This document shows positions 3,006 through 42,020 of a stretch of DNA of 64,000 bases, in pieces; within the stretch, counting starts at the first letter, position 1, and each line of letters begins with the position of its first letter. Below the pieces are notes generated by a model, which saw nothing but the letters and a program-made list of their open reading frames with translations, was not told the origin of the DNA and made no database searches. Origin of the DNA: Blastocladiella emersonii ATCC 22665 (taxonomy: Eukaryota > Fungi > Blastocladiomycota). The position numbers and the translations under genes were made by a program. The stretch covers positions 744,001 through 808,000 of the forward strand of contig JANHCV010000005.1 in NCBI GenBank assembly GCA_025594325.1, in the 5' to 3' direction.

Positions 3006-4597
3006 TCAGCACCCGCACGCGCCGGTTCCTGCCGGCTTGCAGCACGCTGTTGCTGGCGCTGCTCCCTCGCCCGCCGCCGCCGCCTTGGCCTTCTTGGGCC
3101 CACGCCCAGGAATCGGCCGCTTCGCGCCGCCCGCGGGCTTGACGCGGCGGCGGTGCCAGTTGACGCCCCACGGACCCGACGCGTCCTCGCGGGCGTAGTA
3201 GTCCATGGGGTAAACGTCGCGCCACTCGGACTCGCCGAGGACGACGGCGGCCTCGTATGGCGAGAGGAGCGGGGTAGCGAAGAAGCGGCCCCAGTCGATG
3301 GAGAGTCGCGGGCACGCGACCTGGACCCAGGCGCCGACGTCCGCGAACTCGGCGAGGCGGGCGGGGAAGATCTCGCTCATGCATACGACGACGACGGGGA
3401 TGCCGCGCTGGGCGAGCGCGTTGCGGACCCAGCCGAGCACGTCCGGGCTGCCCTGGCGGCCGAGCGTGCCCAGGATCAGGCCCCACTTCTTGGCAGCGCG
3501 CGCCGCGTCCATGGCGTCGATGCGCGCGCGGCGCATGTCGGCGTGGTCGTACCGCTCGCGCGTCAGCTGCGACGCGTACGGGTCGTACCGGTACGCGGGC
3601 AGGTCCGGGTTGTGGATCAGGATCGACTCGAGGTGGAACTTGCCGTCGCCCAGGTACACGACCGCGTCGATCGAGTCGTCGAGCCGCGGGGAGGTGCACC
3701 CGAGGATCTCGCCGGGACTCAGCGGCTTGGTCTGCGGCACCATCACGTCGTAGTGCGCCGCGAGCTCCTGCTTAGCGACGTGCAGGCTGCCGACGAACTG
3801 GATCGTCGCCACGAGCGCGAGCCGCGAGCCCAGCTCGAGGTTGTGCTTGACAATGTCGACGAAATGCGACACGTCGAACTGGATGTCGACAAACACGTAC
3901 AGCGTCTTGATGGTGGTCACGTCGACGGGGACTACGGCGGGGGATTGGGTCAGCAATCGGCCGTCACTTCAAGAGAACCAGGCAGATACGCACTCAAGCA
4001 CGAGTGGCCGTAATGCACCATGAAATCGCACCCGAGCGCGCGCGCCGTGAAGTCGTCGACGCAGCACGCGCCGTAGGTCACGTCGCCCATGATGACGGTA
4101 TCGACGCCCGTGAACTGCTCGAGAATGTCGGACAGAATACACGCAAACATCTGGAGACCCTCGGGCAGCTGCAGGGCGACGCGCTTGGCGCCGCACTCGG
4201 TGATCTGGTGCACCGTCTTGTGGATCTCAAAGTTGTAGTTGGCCGGCAGCGTCGCAATCGCCGCGTTGAGCAGCGGGTTGTGCAGGATCTCGTCCGGAAT
4301 CGCCCCGCGCTTCACCTTGCCCGCTGCGCCGCCGGAGGTGCCCGTGCCGAGCTGCACCAGCGCGCCCGCGTCCTCGATCGACGCCTGCGAGCCCGAGTTC
4401 GCGGCGGCGGCGGCGGTGGCGTCCTCCGAGGGGGTGCCGCCGGCCGACTTGACGACGGCATCCACCTTGCGCGAGCTGCCGACGAAGCGCTTGCGCGCGA
4501 CCTTGGCTGGCGCCGCCGCGGCGGTCGTCGTCTCGGGAGCCGCGGCCGGTGGCGTCGGCGTCGACGTTGCAGTTACATTCGAGGGTGGCGATGACAT
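3006..4597 (-). CDS. DPH1: Diphthamide biosynthesis protein 1 (2-(3-amino-3-carboxypropyl)histidine synthase subunit)
   Basis: [43 protein letters not shown] (across the intron at 3993-3932), [21 protein letters not shown] and YPMDYY. Confidence 0.95.
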
Positions 4598-4797
4598 GGT
4601 TGCTTCGTTGCGGTATGGGTCTAGGGGAGTAGAGGTGGTCAAGGTGTGCCTACGCCCCTTCGCAGCATCGGCCACCGCCGCAACGTGACGTGTTGTTGGG
4701 CGGGCTCGGCTGACTGGCCGCCAATCTAACCGCGCGTTGACCGACGCGCCTCCCCGGTCCCTGCCCTCAACAACGACAACACGTAACGCTATACACC

Positions 4798-5250
4798 ATG
4801 ATCGCTTCCGCTCTCCGCAACGCTGCGCGCCGGTCGGCCACGGGCGTCCGCCGCTACACGTCGGGCAAGGTCGCCGAGGTGACGGGCGAGGCGTTCGCCA
4901 AGACCATCACGTCGTCGAAGGTGCCCGTGCTCGTCGACTTTTACGCCACGTACGGTCCCTCCCTGACTGGTTACCTGCCTGAAATCTCACGCGAACTCTC
5001 GCGCGCGTGTAGGTGGTGCGGCCCGTGCCGCATGCTGGCGCCGGCGCTCGCGACCGTGGCCGAGCAGAACGCGGCGACGCTGGCCGTGGTCAAGGTGGAC
5101 ACGGACGAGGCCATGGAGGTGGCCGTCAAGTACGGCATCTCGGCGCTGCCGACCGTGGTGCTGTTCAAGAACGGCCACGAGGTGGACCGCTTCATGGGCG
5201 TGCGCAACGCCGAGGCCGTGCAGGCGTTCGTCGACCAGCACAAGGAGTAA
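4798..5250 (+). CDS. Mitochondrial thioredoxin
   Basis: Arg/Ala/Ser-rich presequence ([20 protein letters not shown]). Removing a 63-nt in-frame intron at 4950-5012 restores VDFYATWCGPC. Also contains [13 protein letters not shown]. Confidence 0.9.
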
Positions 5251-5425
5251 GTTCACGATACACATGCTTTGGGCATTCGCCCGCGTCGTGGAGCACCGAG
5301 TCGCGACGAGAGAGAGCGAGAGCTAGCGAGCGAGGTATGGACAGGACGATCGTGATAACAAATGGACAACAGGCGAGAGAGAATGAGGGGGCGGGTGGGG
5401 TAGTGTTGCAGGCGGGAACGACCGC

Positions 5426-5735
5426 TTACTGCTCCTGCTGCTGCTCGAGCTGGCGGCGCTTGTGCTCGCGCACCAGAGCCAGGGCCTTCTCGAGCTCCAC
5501 CTCCTGGCGCTGCTGCACGCCGTACAGCCAGTAGCCGAACGCGCCGAAGATGGTCGCCGCACCAGCGTGGCCAGCGGCGCCTACACACGTTGGTGGTGAG
5601 CGTCCTGGACCGGAAACCGCGGCGATCCGGCACCGACGTACCCGACAGCGGGTGCCGGCGCTCAATGGCGTTGGCAAAGGCGCGGGCGGTCAGACCGAAC
5701 GCGGCCCAGCCGGTCACACTCGTGAACAGGGTCAT
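5426..5735 (-). CDS. NADH:ubiquinone oxidoreductase accessory subunit, NDUFC2/B14.5b-like
   Basis: About 82 aa after removing the intron at 5641-5581: GWAAFGLTARAFANAIERRHPL...GAFGYWLYGVQQRQEVELEK. This follows the fungal B14.5b pattern (W.GFGL.VR...GIE.RP / FGYWL..V..RQ). Confidence 0.75.
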
Positions 5736-6078
5736 GGTTTCTCAAATTGGGCGTGGGGTGATGGTGCTGGGTGGTCGCGCAACGAGCGGGGATCGCGGCT
5801 GCTGCGTCGTCGGTGATTCGTGGACCGGTGGAAGTGGGCTCCGCGGGCAGACTGCGCAAAGTCGCAGGTCGGGTCGATACGTTGCAGATGGTGGCTCCGT
5901 CGTGCGTCGTCGCTTCGGTCGCTGGCCCGCTCAAAGCGACGGTGCAGCGAGCGGGGCGATGCAAAGCCGGCGAGTGGCGTGCGGTCACGCGGGCGGGGCC
6001 GATGATGGGTGTGGCAGGTCGATCGCTCGCGTTTTGTGAGACGCGTCGCGCCTCGCTTCGCTGCCTCTCCCCTTGACC

Positions 6079-34123: not shown

Positions 34124-35346
34124 ATGTTCGCCCGTGCGACCGCCTCCTCCGTGCGTGCTGGTACGGGCGGTAACCGCGTCTTGCTCGGCCTCCCCCGCGC
34201 CCGCCCCGTCGTCGGCTGCTCCCACCATGTATCAACACACGATGCGAGACGGATCATGGATCAACGACCATGCACGATCCCTCGCCCAACACGCGCCATG
34301 AACCAGCGAACGAGCGAGCGAGCGACTCGACGACGACGGAGCAGCGGAGGGAGGAGAACCTCGCACGAGTTCATGTATCCTGATCGCCTACCCCCTCACG
34401 TTTAGCGCGCCAGCTCTCGACGGCTGCCTACGACAGCACGTACAAGAACCTGCTGCTGACCAAGAACACCAAGGTGATCTGCCAGGGCTTCACGGGCAAG
34501 CAGGGCACGTTCCACTCGGAGCAGGCCATTGCCTACGGCACCAACATGGTCGGCGGCGTGTCGCCCAAGAAGGCCGGCACCGAGCACCTCGGCCTGCCCG
34601 TGTTCCGCAACGTGCAGGAGGCCGTCGACACGGTCCAGCCCGACGCCTCGGTCATCTACGTGCCGCCGCCGGGCGCCGCCGCCGCCATCCTCGAGGCCAT
34701 TGAGGCCGAGGTGCCCCTCGTCGTCGCCATCACCGAGGGCATCCCGCAGGCCGACATGGTCAAGGTCAAGCAGGCCCTGCTCACCCAGTCCAAGACCCGC
34801 CTCGTGGGCCCCAACTGCCCCGGCATCATCAAGCCCGAGGCGTGCAAGATCGGCATCATGCCCGGCCACATCCACAAGGCCGGCCGCATCGGCATCGTGT
34901 CGCGCTCGGGCACCCTCACCTACGAGGCCGTGCACCAGACCACGCTCGCGGGTCTCGGCCAGTCCCTCTGCGTCGGCATCGGCGGCGACCCGTTCAACGG
35001 CACCAACTTTGTCGACTGCCTCAAGGTCTTCCTCGACGACCCCGAGACCGAGGGCATCATCCTCATCGGCGAGATCGGCGGCACCGCCGAGGAGGAGGCC
35101 GCCGACTTCCTGACCCAGTACAACCTGACCCGCGCCAACCCCAAGCCCGTCGTCTCGTTCATTGCCGGCCAGACGGCTCCCCCCGGCCGCCGCATGGGCC
35201 ACGCTGGCGCTATCATTGCTGGCGGCAAGGGCACCGCCCCCGCCAAGGTCGCCGCCCTCGAGGCCGCCGGCGTCACCGTGTGCGCGTCGCCCGCCAAGCT
35301 CGGCGTCACCATGCACGAGTCCATGGCCGCCGCTGGTCTCCTGTAA
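34124..35346 (+). CDS. SUCLG1: Succinyl-CoA ligase alpha subunit, mitochondrial
   Basis: Presequence exon [12 protein letters not shown], intron at 34161-34405, then [41 protein letters not shown] and RMGHAGAII. Confidence 0.97.
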
Positions 35347-36578: not shown

Positions 36579-36947
36579 GGTTGTTGGTACGTTGCAGGGT
36601 GGGCGGGCGGGGCCGGTTGGGGAGAGCGAGAGCCGCGGCGGGGGGCGTCGGCGCCTTTTGTAGGTCGGCTCAAAGCGAACGGCGAGGCGTTCTCGAAGCA
36701 GAGCGGGTTCTTGAAGAAGGGCGCGACGGCACAATCATGTCCGCCATCCGTCGTATGAGCGGGACAGGGCGTGGGGCTTGCGGCAGGGGGACTTGCTTGC
36801 GGCCGGCCATCGCCAAAGGGCACGCCGTCCCGTACCGCCTCGCCGTCCACCACGATTGCGCATGTATACTGTATAGACGACGACGCGACACTCGGTGCAA
36901 CGGATCCGCGCCACCGTCCCACATCCTCGCTGGCCGATCCCCTCAAG

Positions 36948-39879
36948 ATGTCCGCCCCGGAGCGGGTGTGCCGCGCGCACCGCCCCCGCCCTCGCCCAAG
37001 GAGGATTCTGGCCGCCATCCTCGGCATCGTCCTCGCGTCCGCCACCCTCGCGACCGCCACGCAGCAGGCGTGCCGCGCCAGCCGCGACTGCCCGGCGCCC
37101 GACCTCGACGTGTGCCTGTTCGGCCGGTGCATCCACGCCCCGCGTGCGTGCCTGCCCGGCGCCGGCGTGCCCAACGCCGGGTGCGAGACGGGTTACTCGT
37201 GTGTTGCCGGCGTGTGTGTCCTCGACCTCGACTACAGTCCGTGTTTTTTAGCAAAAGAGCGCGGGATGTCAACTCACACGTCCGCGTGTAGGCTCCGGCG
37301 CCATCTTCCAGCGGTGCTACTGGAAACACCCCGCCAACGCGACCTCACCATCGCCCGCCGCATCGACGACGGCCGGGATCGCGTCCGCGCCCATGGCGGC
37401 GGGGGGCGACGGGAGTCTCACGACGCCGCTCGTCGCCCCACCACCGGTGCCCGCCGACTCTTCAGCCAGCGACGCGGTCCTGCAGCAGGTCCTGGCGGTC
37501 GCGTGCGAGCCGGGCGAGAAATACGACTGCGTGAACGGGTTCTGCGTCGACAAGCTGACGCAGCGCCGCATCGTGTCCGGGTACACGAACGCGACGGCGT
37601 TTGCCGAGACGCACGTCGCGCTGCTCTCTGCGGCCGTCACGACACCACCGGTCGACTCGGCATCCGCGTCACCCCCACCCATCACCGCGTGCACCCTGTA
37701 CAGCCACCTGTTCGTCGCGACGGGCGGGCGCACGTGGCGGCCCGTCGCGAAACAGTACCTGTCGCTCGACGACCTGTACGACACGCGGTGCTGCTTCCCG
37801 TCGCCCGTCACGGGGCTGCAGTGCTCCGACAACGCGCGCAACTCGCTCGACGCGGTCCTCGTGCTGGGTCTCGACGACCGGAACTTGACCGGCGTGCTCC
37901 CTGCGCCCCTGTGGACCGCGTTTCCGAAAATCCGCACGCTCGCGGTCGGGCATAACCCGGACCTCGTCGTCCCGCCCGCGAATCTCGGGAAGCTCGCGGA
38001 CCTCGCGATCCTCTCGGCGTCGCGCGTTCGGCTCGCCGACGACGCGCCGGCGTGGGCCGCGTGGACACGCGGCGATGTCGTGCTGCAGTCGCTGCACCCG
38101 AACCAGCCGCCCGCCGCGCTCGCTGGTCTCGCTTCCCCTTCTTCCTCCTCTTCCTCCTCTTCCTCCGCCGCTGCGCCGAGCTTCCCGTCATGGACCCTGT
38201 CAACCCCGCGCCCCGCGCGCCTCGCGCTGTTCCTCGACGAGAACAACCTGACGGGGTCGCTGCCGCGCATCCTGCCCGGCCCGCCGCGCGGGCTCTCGCT
38301 GCGCAACAACCCGGGCCTCGTCGGCGTCCTCAACACCAACGCCGTCTACCTCGACCTCCGCAGTACCGGCGCCCTCTGCGTGTCGCCGTTCGCCGCGGTG
38401 CCTGGGACGATCACGGACCCCGCGGCGACGGGCGCCGTGGGCGGGGGCGAACTGACCGGGTTCGATGCGGGCGCGAATGGGACGGCGCGGGCGGCGCGGG
38501 ACGCAGACGGAGGAGTGCAGTCTGCATCCTCGGCCGCGCTCCTGCCCGAGGTCGGGCTGGTCCCCGACACGGCCTTCTACGCGACGTGCGGGCTCGGCGT
38601 GACGCTCGGCATCGCGTGGCCCGAGCTGGTCCCCGCCCTGGCCGCCATCGCGGTGTACCTGCTCGGCGTCGCCGTGTACCGCGACCTGGTCGCCGCGCGC
38701 CCGCTCACGCTGCTGTCGCTGGTCTCGATCGCCGTCGAGGTACAGTTCGCGCTGATGCTGGTCGCCGACCCGACGGTCGGCGCCATGGTCGCTCCGCCGA
38801 CGGCCGAGTCGGGCGCGGTCACGTCCGACCCTTCCACCACCACCACGACAACCACCGCGACCGTCGCAACCAGCACCCTGTCGGGCCTACTCAAACTCCT
38901 CTTCTTCGTGTCGATCGTGATCCCGCGCCTGTGCAACGCGTACTACACGCGCCTGCCCGGCCTCCCCCTGCGCCTGCGCGTCCTCGCGATGCTGGACGTG
39001 AACCACTTCATCGAGTACTTCCGCGCGCACGCGGGCAAGGCGTCGCTCGCGCGAGAATACGTCCCGCCGCACCTCCGGTCGCTCGCGATGCTCCAGGCGA
39101 TCCTCAAGGACGCGGCCCAGCTCGCCCTCACGACGTGGGCCGCGCTCTCGGTCCAGTGGAGCGTCACGATGATCGCGATGATCGCCGTCGCGATTTTGGG
39201 GGTCGTCAAGGAGGTCGCGGTCCGCGCCGCGCGCGGGTGTGGCGCGCGCAGCCGCCGGCGGAGGCGGCAGGATTCCCAAGGAACCGAGCTCCACGCGTTC
39301 GCGTCGCTGTTCTCCCGCCGCCGCGGCGCCGCCGGCGTGCACGCGTCGGTCGTCGAACTGCCCCGCTTCAACGCTCCGCCGCAGCCCCCGCCCCCGCTCT
39401 CCCCGGTCCCGACGTACACGTCGCGCCGCGGGTCGCTCGTACACCCTCTTCACACGCCGGGCGGGGGCGGGGGAGACGATAGCCCGATCCCGCGCGTCCT
39501 CGCGACACTCACCGCGCACCGGCCACGGTCGACGGCCGTCGACCCGCGCTCTGCGTCGCCAGCCCGGGGAGGCGGCGGAGGTCAGGCGCGCGGCGGAGCG
39601 GTCGCGCCGGCCGGCGGGGTCTCGTCGCGGCTCTCGACGGCGGTGTCGCTCGGGCCTGTCGATAGTCCGCGGCTCGCGGCGGCGGGGGCGGGAAGGAGCG
39701 AGCTGGCCTCGGTCCAGGGCGGCGCGGGTGGCGAGTGCGGGAGTGACGACGAGGAAGAGGATGGGTCGGATCTCGCGTCGCAGGTGTCGTCGTCGTGGCG
39801 CGGTCGGAGACACCACCACGATGGCAACGGTGGTGGCGGGAGCCCGGGCCGGCGGCAACCTCCTCCCCCCGCAGCATGA
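36948..39879 (+). CDS. Receptor-like membrane protein: signal peptide, Cys-rich modules, LRRs and a multipass TM domain
   Basis: Exon 1 (36948-37236) carries a signal peptide and C-x5-C...C-x4-C modules. The intron at 37237-37291 joins in frame to ORF 37393-39879. LRRs: LGLDDRNLTGVLP, LFLDENNLTGSLP and LSLRNNPGLVGVL. About 5-6 hydrophobic segments follow, then a low-complexity cytosolic tail. Confidence 0.8.
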
Positions 39880-39929: not shown

Positions 39930-42020
39930 CTACGCATCCGCCTCATACGCGCTCGCAATCGCGCTGAGATCGCGCGTGTCGCACATGGCAGCCCAGTCGG
40001 CCTTGTTCATGAGGAGGGCGGCCATCTTGAGCGTCTCCCAGACGTTGGACGAGGTGAACCCGGAGGTGACGCTGCCGTTCCCGCCGGCGGCCTGGACCTG
40101 GAGCGCCTCGATGAGGTGGTGCGCGGCCTCGCGGTGCTGGCCGAGGTTGATGCACGAGATGGCGAGGTTGTACCGGGCGCGGATGTACGACGGGTTGATG
40201 GCGAGCGCGTGGAAGTACGCGTCCATGGCGCGGCTGGCGTCGTGCGAGTTGGCGAGCGTAGCCCCCAGCTTGTTCCACAGGAGGTAGTCGTCGGGCCGCG
40301 CCGCGAGCGCCGCCTGGAAGCAGTCGACGGCCTTGGCGTACTCTTCCGAGACGTTGAACAGCACCCCCAAACCGACCTGCACGTCCGCGTCAATCACCTC
40401 GCCGCCCGACGTCGCCGCCTCGAGGAACAGCGACGACACGTCGCGGAAGCTGTCGCCCGAGGTCACGATCGCGTCGGCGAGGGGCGCGTACTTGGGGTTG
40501 TTGCGGATCCACTGGCGCAGGCTGTCGAAGGCGGGCTCCGGGTGGTTCTCGTTGGTGTAGCTGACCGAGAGCGCGAGCCACGCGTCGAGCTGGGCCGGGT
40601 CGGCCTCGAGGGCGCGGCGGAGCGCCGAAATGGCCTGCCGCTCGCGCTCGTTCTCCTGCTGCTTGATCCCGAGCAGCGTCCACGCGGCCGCGTCGCGCGG
40701 GTCCGCCTGCACGCGGGCCTCGAGGGCGAGGATCGACTCGGCGAGCGGCAGCGTCGCGAGGGGCAGCGCGCGCAGCTGGTCGACGGGCTGGCCGAGGTAC
40801 GCGTTGGCGGGCTCGAAATCGTACGCCGCGTACTCGGGCAGGTCCATGTTCCACTGCGCCAGCCGCTCGATGGGCGCGCCCGTGGCGGCGGCCATCTCGT
40901 CGAACTGGCGCGCCCACGACACCGACGACGCCGCGTCCTCGAGCCCGGTGCCGAAGCTGGCGAGCCCGTCAAAGTCCTCGGCCCAGTCGCCCTCGATCCC
41001 CTGGTACTGGTTCCCAAACTCCTTGGACCACATGGACTCGACGTAGTTGTCGACGCGCGACGAGAAGTCGGACGCCCACGTCCCGCCCGTGTTCTCGACG
41101 ACCTTGTCGCCCTCGATCGTCACCTCCTGGTCGCGCAGCTGGCCCATGAACTTGAGGAACTCGGAGTTGGAGAACTTGGGGTTCTCGTGGGCGCGGTCGC
41201 CGACGGCCTCGAGCAGCTCGCCCGCGGTCTTGGCCAGCTCCTCGCGGTCGGTCGCAAACTCGGACGCCCACGCGTCCGCCTTGGCCTGCTCGGCCTGCGC
41301 AAACTCGTCGCCCCACGACGCCGTCGCGTGCGCGGCCCGCGCGTCCTCGAAGGCGCGCTCCAGCGCCTGCGTGTCGGCCGCCGTCAGCTCCACGGGGGCT
41401 GCAGGTCCCGCAGATTGGAACTCGTGTGCCCACGCGGGCGCCGCCGCGGCCACGGCGTGCGACTCGCGCGCGGATGCAAAGGCCGCGTCAAAGTGCGCCA
41501 TCTCCTCGCGCGACATGTGCGGCGCGGGAGCGGACGTGTGCTGGAAAGTGGCGAACTCGGCGTGCCAGTCGGCGGTGACGGGGCCCTTACCCTTGCCCGC
41601 CATCACGGCGGCGGGCGGAGGAGGAGGGCCGTGCATCAGGTCCAGTTCCTGGTGCAGGTCGCGGAACGCGAACGCCGCGGCGTCGGGCGGGCCCATCATG
41701 GCGGCGGCGCCCGCGCTCGACGGGCCAGCGGCACTGCTGCGCAGGAACTCTTCGGCGAGCTATACACGACGCGATGGTTAGGAGGGATCGCGGCCAGCAG
41801 AACCGGTGCGCGTACGTCCTGGCGGTGCAGCGCATCGGCCGTGACATTGGGTTGCCGGAACTACGTGTCGCGCGAGAGAGTGTGAGATGGGTTATAGGGG
41901 AACAGGGACAACCGCGAGCGAACGTACGCCCTGTGGCGCGCCGCGGAACGAGTCCTGGAATGTGTCCTGGTCAAACTGCTGCTTGAGGGCGCCGAGCGGG
42001 TTGACGGGGCCGCAGTCCAT
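39930..42020 (-). CDS. PEX5: Peroxisomal targeting signal 1 receptor
   Basis: N-terminal Cys (MDCGPVNPL), eight WxxxF motifs, KFSNSEFLKFM, and TPRs (AWTLLGIKQQENERE, DVQVGLGVLF, LLWNKLGATLANS, YIRARYNLAISCINLG). Two short introns inferred near the 5' end. Confidence 0.95.

Follow-up and report, generated by a model that had tools for sequence, protein, structure and literature searches.

A predicted blastoclad surface protein joining a plant-type leucine-rich repeat ectodomain to a multipass membrane module

The analysed region is a 64-kb window of the genome of Blastocladiella emersonii ATCC 22665 (contig JANHCV010000005.1), and all coordinates given here are positions within this window. 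The sequence from 36948 to 39879 reads as one intact two-exon gene on the + strand, the product of which would combine a secreted, plant-type leucine-rich repeat (LRR) ectodomain with a multipass membrane domain. Exon 1 (36948..37236) contains the start codon, an Arg-rich n-region, a signal peptide (ILAAILGIVLASATLATA) and two small Cys modules. A 55-nt GT..AG intron (37237..37291), evident from the sequence and from a drop in the G+C content of third codon positions (GC3), links frame 0 to the frame of a long open reading frame (ORF). Exon 2 (37292..39879) stays open from the acceptor site as far as the stop codon at 39877-39879 and encodes the remaining ectodomain, the membrane module and a tail. 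Residue numbers (aa) refer to exon 2 (37294-39876), and the products of the two exons were searched separately. The strings quoted in a preliminary description of this DNA are all present and lie in a single frame, save for the frame change at the intron.

The region is 70% G+C, and long ORFs are present in several frames. A single frame has coding composition, as evidenced by GC3 values of 0.8-1.0 across 37351-39750 in the frame of the 828-codon ORF (37393..39879). Third codon positions are also rich in G/C upstream of the first ATG of this ORF, back to the acceptor site, and GC3 stays at 0.8-1.0 throughout exon 2. Over 36901-37200, GC3 values of 0.86-0.96 are found in another frame, which holds the ATG at 36948 and the signal peptide. 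The gene model totals ~958 codons, with a GC3 of about 0.9. The splice is supported by the conservation among homologues of the junction peptide, LDLDY-S-SGAIFQRC, which is kept as LDLDSSSGAIYKRC in Catenaria and as LDADSSSGAMYQRC in a further relative. Composition and conservation together thus point to a transcript from a single gene with a 55-nt intron. An exact look-up of the 828-aa ORF retrieved no record.

Relatives were sought with phmmer, run exhaustively over 1.84 billion representatives with aa 420-665, the membrane part, as a query. Five matches were obtained, four of which are genuine (E 7e-37 to 3e-19): Catenaria anguillulae ORZ41758.1, Blastocladiella britannica KAI9219613.1, Sorochytrium milnesiophthora KAL7746351.1 and an ORF from a JGI metagenome. 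The fifth match, P0005, was produced by homopolymer runs and was discarded as a poly-Thr artefact. Alignment of the four relatives to the window protein extends from the signal peptide through the last transmembrane (TM) helix, and each keeps the complete architecture. The N-terminal layout of exon 1 is shared by P0001, P0003 and P0004, and is found upstream of P0002, the metagenome homologue, at locus L002. Because the fusion is conserved across relatives, it is no gene-prediction accident. The one-gene fusion proposed in the preliminary description is therefore kept in four other blastoclad-type sequences, and the alignments define a small family with a conserved ectodomain and multipass module, seen only in blastoclads among these searches and probably present as a single copy in Blastocladiomycota.

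All four relatives are annotated as "hypothetical protein", none has a Pfam domain, and each is alone in its own 90% cluster. Literature searches for XK-LRR fusions or fungal XKRs yielded nothing relevant, and no description of the family or of an LRR-XKR-type fusion. The family is undescribed, as had been surmised; the class is fungal, as also proposed, and narrower than that term implies, being confined to Blastocladiomycota as far as the searches reach.

The ectodomain begins with the signal peptide and at least three small Cys modules, both of which had been noted before. Exon 1 contains eight Cys residues, and its DUF7107-, DX- and EB-like Pfam matches are all below threshold (E 0.005-0.37). 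The third module, CEPGEKYDCVNGFC (37504..37545), lies in exon 2, aligns to C.P..C..G.C in the homologues and weakly repeats the CETGYSCVAGVC-type module of exon 1 (tblastn E 1.4). A plant-type LRR N-terminal cap, recognised by alignment and by hhalign, follows at aa 128-189 (37675..37860). Residues P128, C133, W148, D160, C166, C167 and C177 of the cap are invariant in the five-sequence alignment, and CCFPSPVTGLQCS...VLVLGLDDRNLTGVLP is located at aa 166-204. Comparison of the family cap with the N-termini of seven plant receptor-like proteins (RLPs) by hhalign gave a probability of 95.9% (E 5.6e-9), with CC..G[IL].C aligned to dCC.W.GV.C of the plant RLPs and the first repeats of the two groups aligned to each other. 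By this comparison, a Cys-flanked cap lies directly ahead of the first repeat. The Trp of C.W.GV.C is not conserved in the family cap.

The LRR region (aa 190-365; 37861..38388) consists of ~6-7 degenerate 24-residue repeats, as indicated by pattern counts, alignment and profiles. The clearest repeats are found at aa 190-213, 214-237, 309-332 and 333-352; the repeat strings LFLDENNLTGSLP and LSLRNNPGLVGVL are located at aa 312-324 and 334-346, respectively. A poly-Ser insertion (aa 282-292) occurs among the degenerate middle repeats, and the domain closes with an LDLRSTGALC-type C-terminal cap. Invariant residues are R196, N197, L198, G200, L202, N221, L224, N339, L346 and C362, and the invariant columns comprise the cap cysteines, RNL.G.L, GNP.L, NPGL.G.L and the Cys of the C-terminal cap. 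LRR pattern counts are above those of all or nearly all of 2000 shuffles: L.L..N.L.G.LP occurs once (0.00 expected) and L.[LFV]..[NH][NP] three times (0.08 expected).

Searched against a database of 5.8 billion, the five-sequence profile matches plant LRR-RLPs (RLP12, EIX2, GSO1-like and Cuscuta receptor 1-like) with E values of 1e-8 to 1e-2. The matches comprise 10 LRR proteins with Pfam LRR domains, 7 of which carry PF08263, and all seven source-named matches are plant LRR receptor-like proteins or kinases. An hhalign comparison of the family profile with one plant LRR protein gave a probability of 90.9% (E 1.2e-6). Two repeats with the full L..L.L..N.L.G.IP consensus, the accompanying degenerate repeats and the recognition by profiles argue for genuine 24-residue LRRs, and the ectodomain is predicted to be a short, degenerate plant-type LRR domain. 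A Gly/Ala-rich, non-conserved juxtamembrane linker (38389..38592; pLDDT, the predicted local distance difference test score, <50), which features an NGT sequon and the invariant C432, leads to the membrane module.

Hydropathy analysis of the membrane module revealed four strong TM peaks (aa 444-462, 473-491, 529-547 and 620-638). The AlphaFold2 (AF2) model obtained with the five-sequence alignment features six helices (pLDDT 70.3, pTM 0.60), in agreement with the "about 5-6" TM segments counted earlier. TM1 (aa 434-462; 38593..38679; hydropathy 1.97; helix 15-43 of the model) is followed by a basic loop in all five sequences. TM2 (aa 470-491; 38701..38766; hydropathy 2.20; helix 51-72) carries the invariant intramembrane residues E482 and F485. 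The next loop (38767..38877), which has low pLDDT, is Ser/Thr-rich, and poly-Thr in this protein; it contains 0-2 K/R and 5-15 S/T in each of the five sequences, and NxS/T sequons in two homologues. TM3 (aa 529-551; 38878..38946; hydropathy 1.91; helix 99-132) ends in IPRLCNAYYTR, the most conserved motif of the family, in which R545, N548, Y550, Y551, T552 and R553 are invariant.

H4 (aa 559-583; 38968..39042) is an amphipathic, kinked helix (140-148 and 150-164 of the model) with 3-5 K/R per sequence and five invariant residues (R562, D568, H571, F572 and F576). H5 (aa 592-619; 39067..39150; helix 173-200) is hydrophilic and below the hydropathy threshold. It features the stripe Q601-K605-Q609 (LQAILKDAAQLAL), is preceded by Y589-x-P591-P592 and is invariant at 6 of 28 columns; MLQAILKDAAQLALT is located at aa 599-613 (39088-39132). 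TM6 (aa 624-641; 39163..39216; hydropathy 2.17; helix 205-244) contains the invariant K639 and E640, followed by R644. The tail (39217..39876), ~215 aa of Arg/Gly/Pro/Ser-rich low complexity, is unconserved and unalignable. Eight K/R occur immediately after TM6, and an RRRRR run and an acidic SDDEEEDGSD patch are also found in the tail.

Since K/R residues are found in the loops read as internal, and S/T residues and sequons in the TM2-TM3 loop, the N-terminus and the LRR domain would be outside, TM1 would run inward, TM2 outward and TM3 inward, and the tail would be cytosolic. The Ser/Thr-rich TM2-TM3 loop, read as extracellular, is probably glycosylated. The end of TM3 and the H4-H5 loop would be inside, H4 would lie in or on the inner leaflet on the cytosolic side, and H5 and TM6 would form a tight hairpin. 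Invariant residues gather at the inner-leaflet side of the module, at the end of TM3, in H4 and in H5.

The membrane module had been described as XK-like. The XK-related (XKR) proteins, Pfam family PF09815, include lipid scramblases of animals. Their eight TM helices fall into two repeats of related structure, ND and CD, each of which includes an inner-leaflet helix, and the N-terminal repeat consists of TM1, TM2, the inner-leaflet helix IH1, TM3 and TM4 (PMC8298096, PMC12334663). XKR TM3, which carries E..PQL and is kinked at PQL, is hydrophilic, highly conserved and missed by hydropathy, and acidic "stairway" residues are borne by TM1 and TM3 (PMC8298096, PMC12334663). In the proteins analysed here, TM2-TM3-H4-H5-TM6 matches TM1-TM2-IH1-TM3-TM4 of XKR8, XKR9, XKR4, XK and CED-8 in order and in predicted orientation. 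By helix order, H4 corresponds to IH1 and H5 to TM3. In both groups this fourth helix shows strong conservation and a hydrophilic character that hides it from hydropathy analysis, and it bears a polar stripe ending in Q-L; the first helix of the unit carries an acidic residue in each. When the membrane model was compared with all 48,161 PDB representatives by a structural aligner, the output of which is ranges rather than residue pairs, three XKR paralogues, from separate sequence clusters or entries, were the best membrane-protein matches (143-152 residues). All three fall on the XKR N-terminal repeat, and TM1 is outside the aligned range.

A language-model neighbour search of the ESM-Atlas placed at rank 5 a cluster with PF09815 in 17% of its members (score 0.82), which is a weak pointer in the same direction. 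The TM-scores from the ESM-Atlas structure search were 0.31-0.45 by query at most. With 38551-39288 as a query, the nearest ESM-Atlas neighbour by language-model features is a Mucoromycota cluster of 120-aa "hypothetical protein" sequences (180 members; score 0.88; TM-score 0.65 by row), followed by a Mucoromycota cluster of 270 aa (0.87) and by a Foraminifera-rich cluster of 260 aa. These clusters may represent distant relatives composed of the TM part only.

The best explanation overall, covering gene, architecture, fold and mechanism, is one that we regard as somewhat probable: the protein would be an LRR surface protein in which TM2, TM3, H4, H5 and TM6 form a five-helix unit akin to the XKR N-terminal repeat, and TM1 would be an added tether that joins the ectodomain to this unit. 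Whether the unit is remotely related to, or shares the fold of, the XKR N-terminal repeat is about evenly balanced. Tentatively, the LRR head would bind an extracellular partner, which may be a ligand, a wall or substrate component or another cell, and TM1 would relay the signal to the polar bundle. There E482, which is buried, would repack together with K605, Q609 and the invariant inner-leaflet face (PRLCNAYYTR, R562-F576 of H4 and Y.PPHL). Because the conserved part consists of this face and of buried polar residues, the output is placed at the inner face, where lipid handling may be altered, as proposed for the Xkr4 ND vestibule, or a cytosolic partner may bind. As the module is a single repeat, pairing with a second copy may be needed. 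A bolder version, which we consider rather doubtful, is that the module is a free-standing "half XKR", the first outside the two-repeat family and the first fused to an extracellular recognition domain. Working as a dimer or with a partner, it would couple LRR ligand binding to scrambling or to membrane thinning at a polar vestibule formed by E482, K605 and Q609.

Several observations weigh against this explanation, and they concern both halves of the protein. The profile searches suggested in the preliminary description (LRRNT_2, LRR and XK-related models) gave nothing above threshold. In the window protein, the best Pfam LRR match is LRR_1 at E 0.31; in the four homologues, LRR_1, LRR_4 and LRR_14 match at E 0.02-0.7, all below threshold, and PF08263 (LRRNT_2) is unmatched in the window protein and in the homologues. 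A single-sequence AF2 prediction of aa 125-665 (pLDDT 39) gave no usable LRR model. The cap and repeats are nonetheless backed by the profile comparisons. The membrane model is built on five sequences, and the other four of the five AF2 models have pLDDT values of 51-58. PF09815 is unmatched by the window protein, by its TM part (E up to 10) and by the four homologues, and neither the TM part nor its profile found a match in sequence searches of the PDB. Foldseek, likewise suggested earlier, gave no PDB match at E <= 0.001 for the model of pLDDT 70 (XKR8 is at rank 30, with E 3.9 and a TM-score of 0.23), and the XKR superpositions have a root-mean-square deviation of 5-6 A on a model of middling confidence. 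None of the five sequences (AAQL, SSQV, LGQL, GMQC and GTQF) has the proline of PQL: Q609 is invariant, the residue after it varies (QL, QV, QC or QF), and the residue at i-4 is an invariant Lys (K605), not Glu. If Q609 is placed on the Q of PQL, K605 would by spacing occupy the position of the XKR stairway Glu, and Ala, Ser, Gly, Met or Thr replaces Pro. In place of the stairway residues (D26, D30 and E141 in hXkr8), the family has one invariant Glu, E482. Instead of two repeats and eight TM helices, a leader TM helix and a single five-helix unit are followed by a disordered tail. Moreover, the signal peptide, the Cys-rich ectodomain, the NxS/T sequons and the charges predict an extracellular N-terminus, rather than the cytosolic termini of XKRs, with a large ectodomain and an extra TM helix. 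By sequence, repeat number, PQL and termini, the module does not qualify as a member of the XKR family. The XK-like label holds to the extent of the neighbour cluster with PF09815, and falls short in the single repeat and the missing motif proline; it denotes a remote resemblance that is plausible but stops short of demonstrated kinship.

Other explanations draw on the same evidence. That the LRR and membrane parts are two genes, or that the exon-1 signal peptide belongs elsewhere and the ORF is an accident of 70% G+C, is highly improbable: long ORFs do arise here in many frames from composition alone, but GC3 is 0.8-1.0 in a single frame along 2.4 kb, the contiguous LRR-to-TM layout is a single ORF in a 48%-GC metagenome contig and recurs in three annotated genomes, and the junction peptide between the exons is conserved. 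The LRR domain may instead be decayed and bind nothing, the protein being a glycosylated structural surface or wall-linking component with a conserved function solely in the membrane module. The full L.L..N.L.G.LP consensus is kept in two repeats only, repeats 3-4 vary in length and include the poly-Ser insertion, Pfam LRR models are below threshold in all five members, and mean column identity is 46% in the membrane module and 38% overall. However, the cap cysteines, the RNL.G.L and GNP.L repeats and the C-cap cysteine are invariant across genera, so the fold appears to be maintained, and plant RLPs are still recognised by the family profile; we consider decay unlikely. A stronger competitor, with a considerable though less than even probability, is that the six helices form a bundle peculiar to this lineage, with no relation to XKRs; the hairpin packing would be generic, K[DE]xxQ[LVCF] coincidental and the protein an LRR adhesin or receptor with a private multipass anchor. 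CD47, with one ectodomain and five TM helices, offers a functional comparison. The lack of a sequence-level link in PF09815 and PDB profile searches, the non-significant Foldseek result and the motif without proline favour such a bundle. In contrast, it leaves to chance that three XKR paralogues are the top membrane-protein matches over the same repeat and 143-152 residues, that helix order, orientation and a poorly hydrophobic, most conserved fourth helix match the published XKR description, and that a language-model neighbour cluster is partly PF09815.

Further differences from XKRs concern function and distribution. With one repeat only, where XKRs have two, the inter-repeat cavities C1 and C2 are impossible in a monomer, and caspase-site logic is not evident in the family. 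XKRs are reported from nematodes to humans (PMC12334663), whereas the family is seen in blastoclads only. In XKR8-basigin, two polypeptides place an Ig ectodomain and a single TM helix beside an XKR-type bundle (PMC8500837). The resemblance to a single TM helix with an extracellular binding domain next to an XKR-type helix bundle is an analogy only, as the family protein is one chain with an LRR ectodomain.

Plant LRR-RLPs and receptor-like kinases, such as RLP12, EIX2 and GSO1, similarly feature an extracellular LRR domain behind a signal peptide, with a CC...G[IVL].C cap running straight into L.L..RNL.G.LP repeats (profile-profile probability 91-96%). In contrast to them, the family has ~6-7 mostly degenerate repeats under every Pfam LRR threshold, a cap without the Trp of C.W.GV.C, small Cys modules ahead of the LRR domain, and six membrane helices without a kinase domain, in place of the single TM helix, kinase-bearing or not, of the plant proteins. 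LRRs and multipass domains also occur in a single polypeptide in LGR-type G-protein-coupled receptors, LRRC8 channels and polycystin-1, and the LRRs of LGR and polycystin-1 are extracellular and N-terminal. Unlike these, the family matches no 7TM or polycystin fold, and no sequence relation was found. Identities as an LGR-type receptor, an LRRC8-like channel, TMEM120 or a DHHC protein were rejected, as neither fold nor sequence signal was obtained.

Surface receptors of zoosporic fungi are almost unknown. Joining a plant-style LRR head to a conserved polar bundle, with neither a kinase nor a lone anchor, would represent a different design of surface sensor or adhesin. If the bundle is truly a single XKR-type repeat, it would offer a clue to the origin of the two-repeat scramblase fold and a natural fusion of an extracellular binding domain to the XKR fold. 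If the resemblance is generic, the family is a clade-restricted orphan membrane family of moderate interest.

Word-index searches with the whole exon-2 protein and with aa 420-690 gave no matches; homopolymer words (poly-S, -T, -G, -R and -P) probably crowded out other candidates, which would account for the blank result. Homopolymer runs in the coding frame include nine Ser in the LRR region (38137-38169) and a Thr run in the outer loop (38827-38850). A scan of metagenome loci with the PRLCNAYYT pattern gave 20 pattern matches, none of which was confirmed. In the metagenome homologue P0002 (JGI 3300047125, on a contig of 48% G+C), the called ORF (4397-5989) lacks the first exon or exons; upstream of it, at ~3800-4150 of L002 (frame 0), a signal peptide and Cys modules (..CPLGYSCVAGQCVFDVDYS..) are found. 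The contig is therefore that of a blastoclad-like eukaryote not sampled so far.

A succinyl-CoA ligase alpha gene (34390-35331, + strand; L001 466-1407), with ~80% translated identity to that of B. britannica, is located a few kb upstream of the family member both in the window and in B. britannica. The two genes are separated by three genes in B. britannica and by one here. On the opposite side, a PEX5-like TPR protein gene (39930-41699, - strand) converges on the gene described here. Its stop codon is ~50 nt from the stop at 39879, and the two 3' ends must therefore be very short or overlapping.

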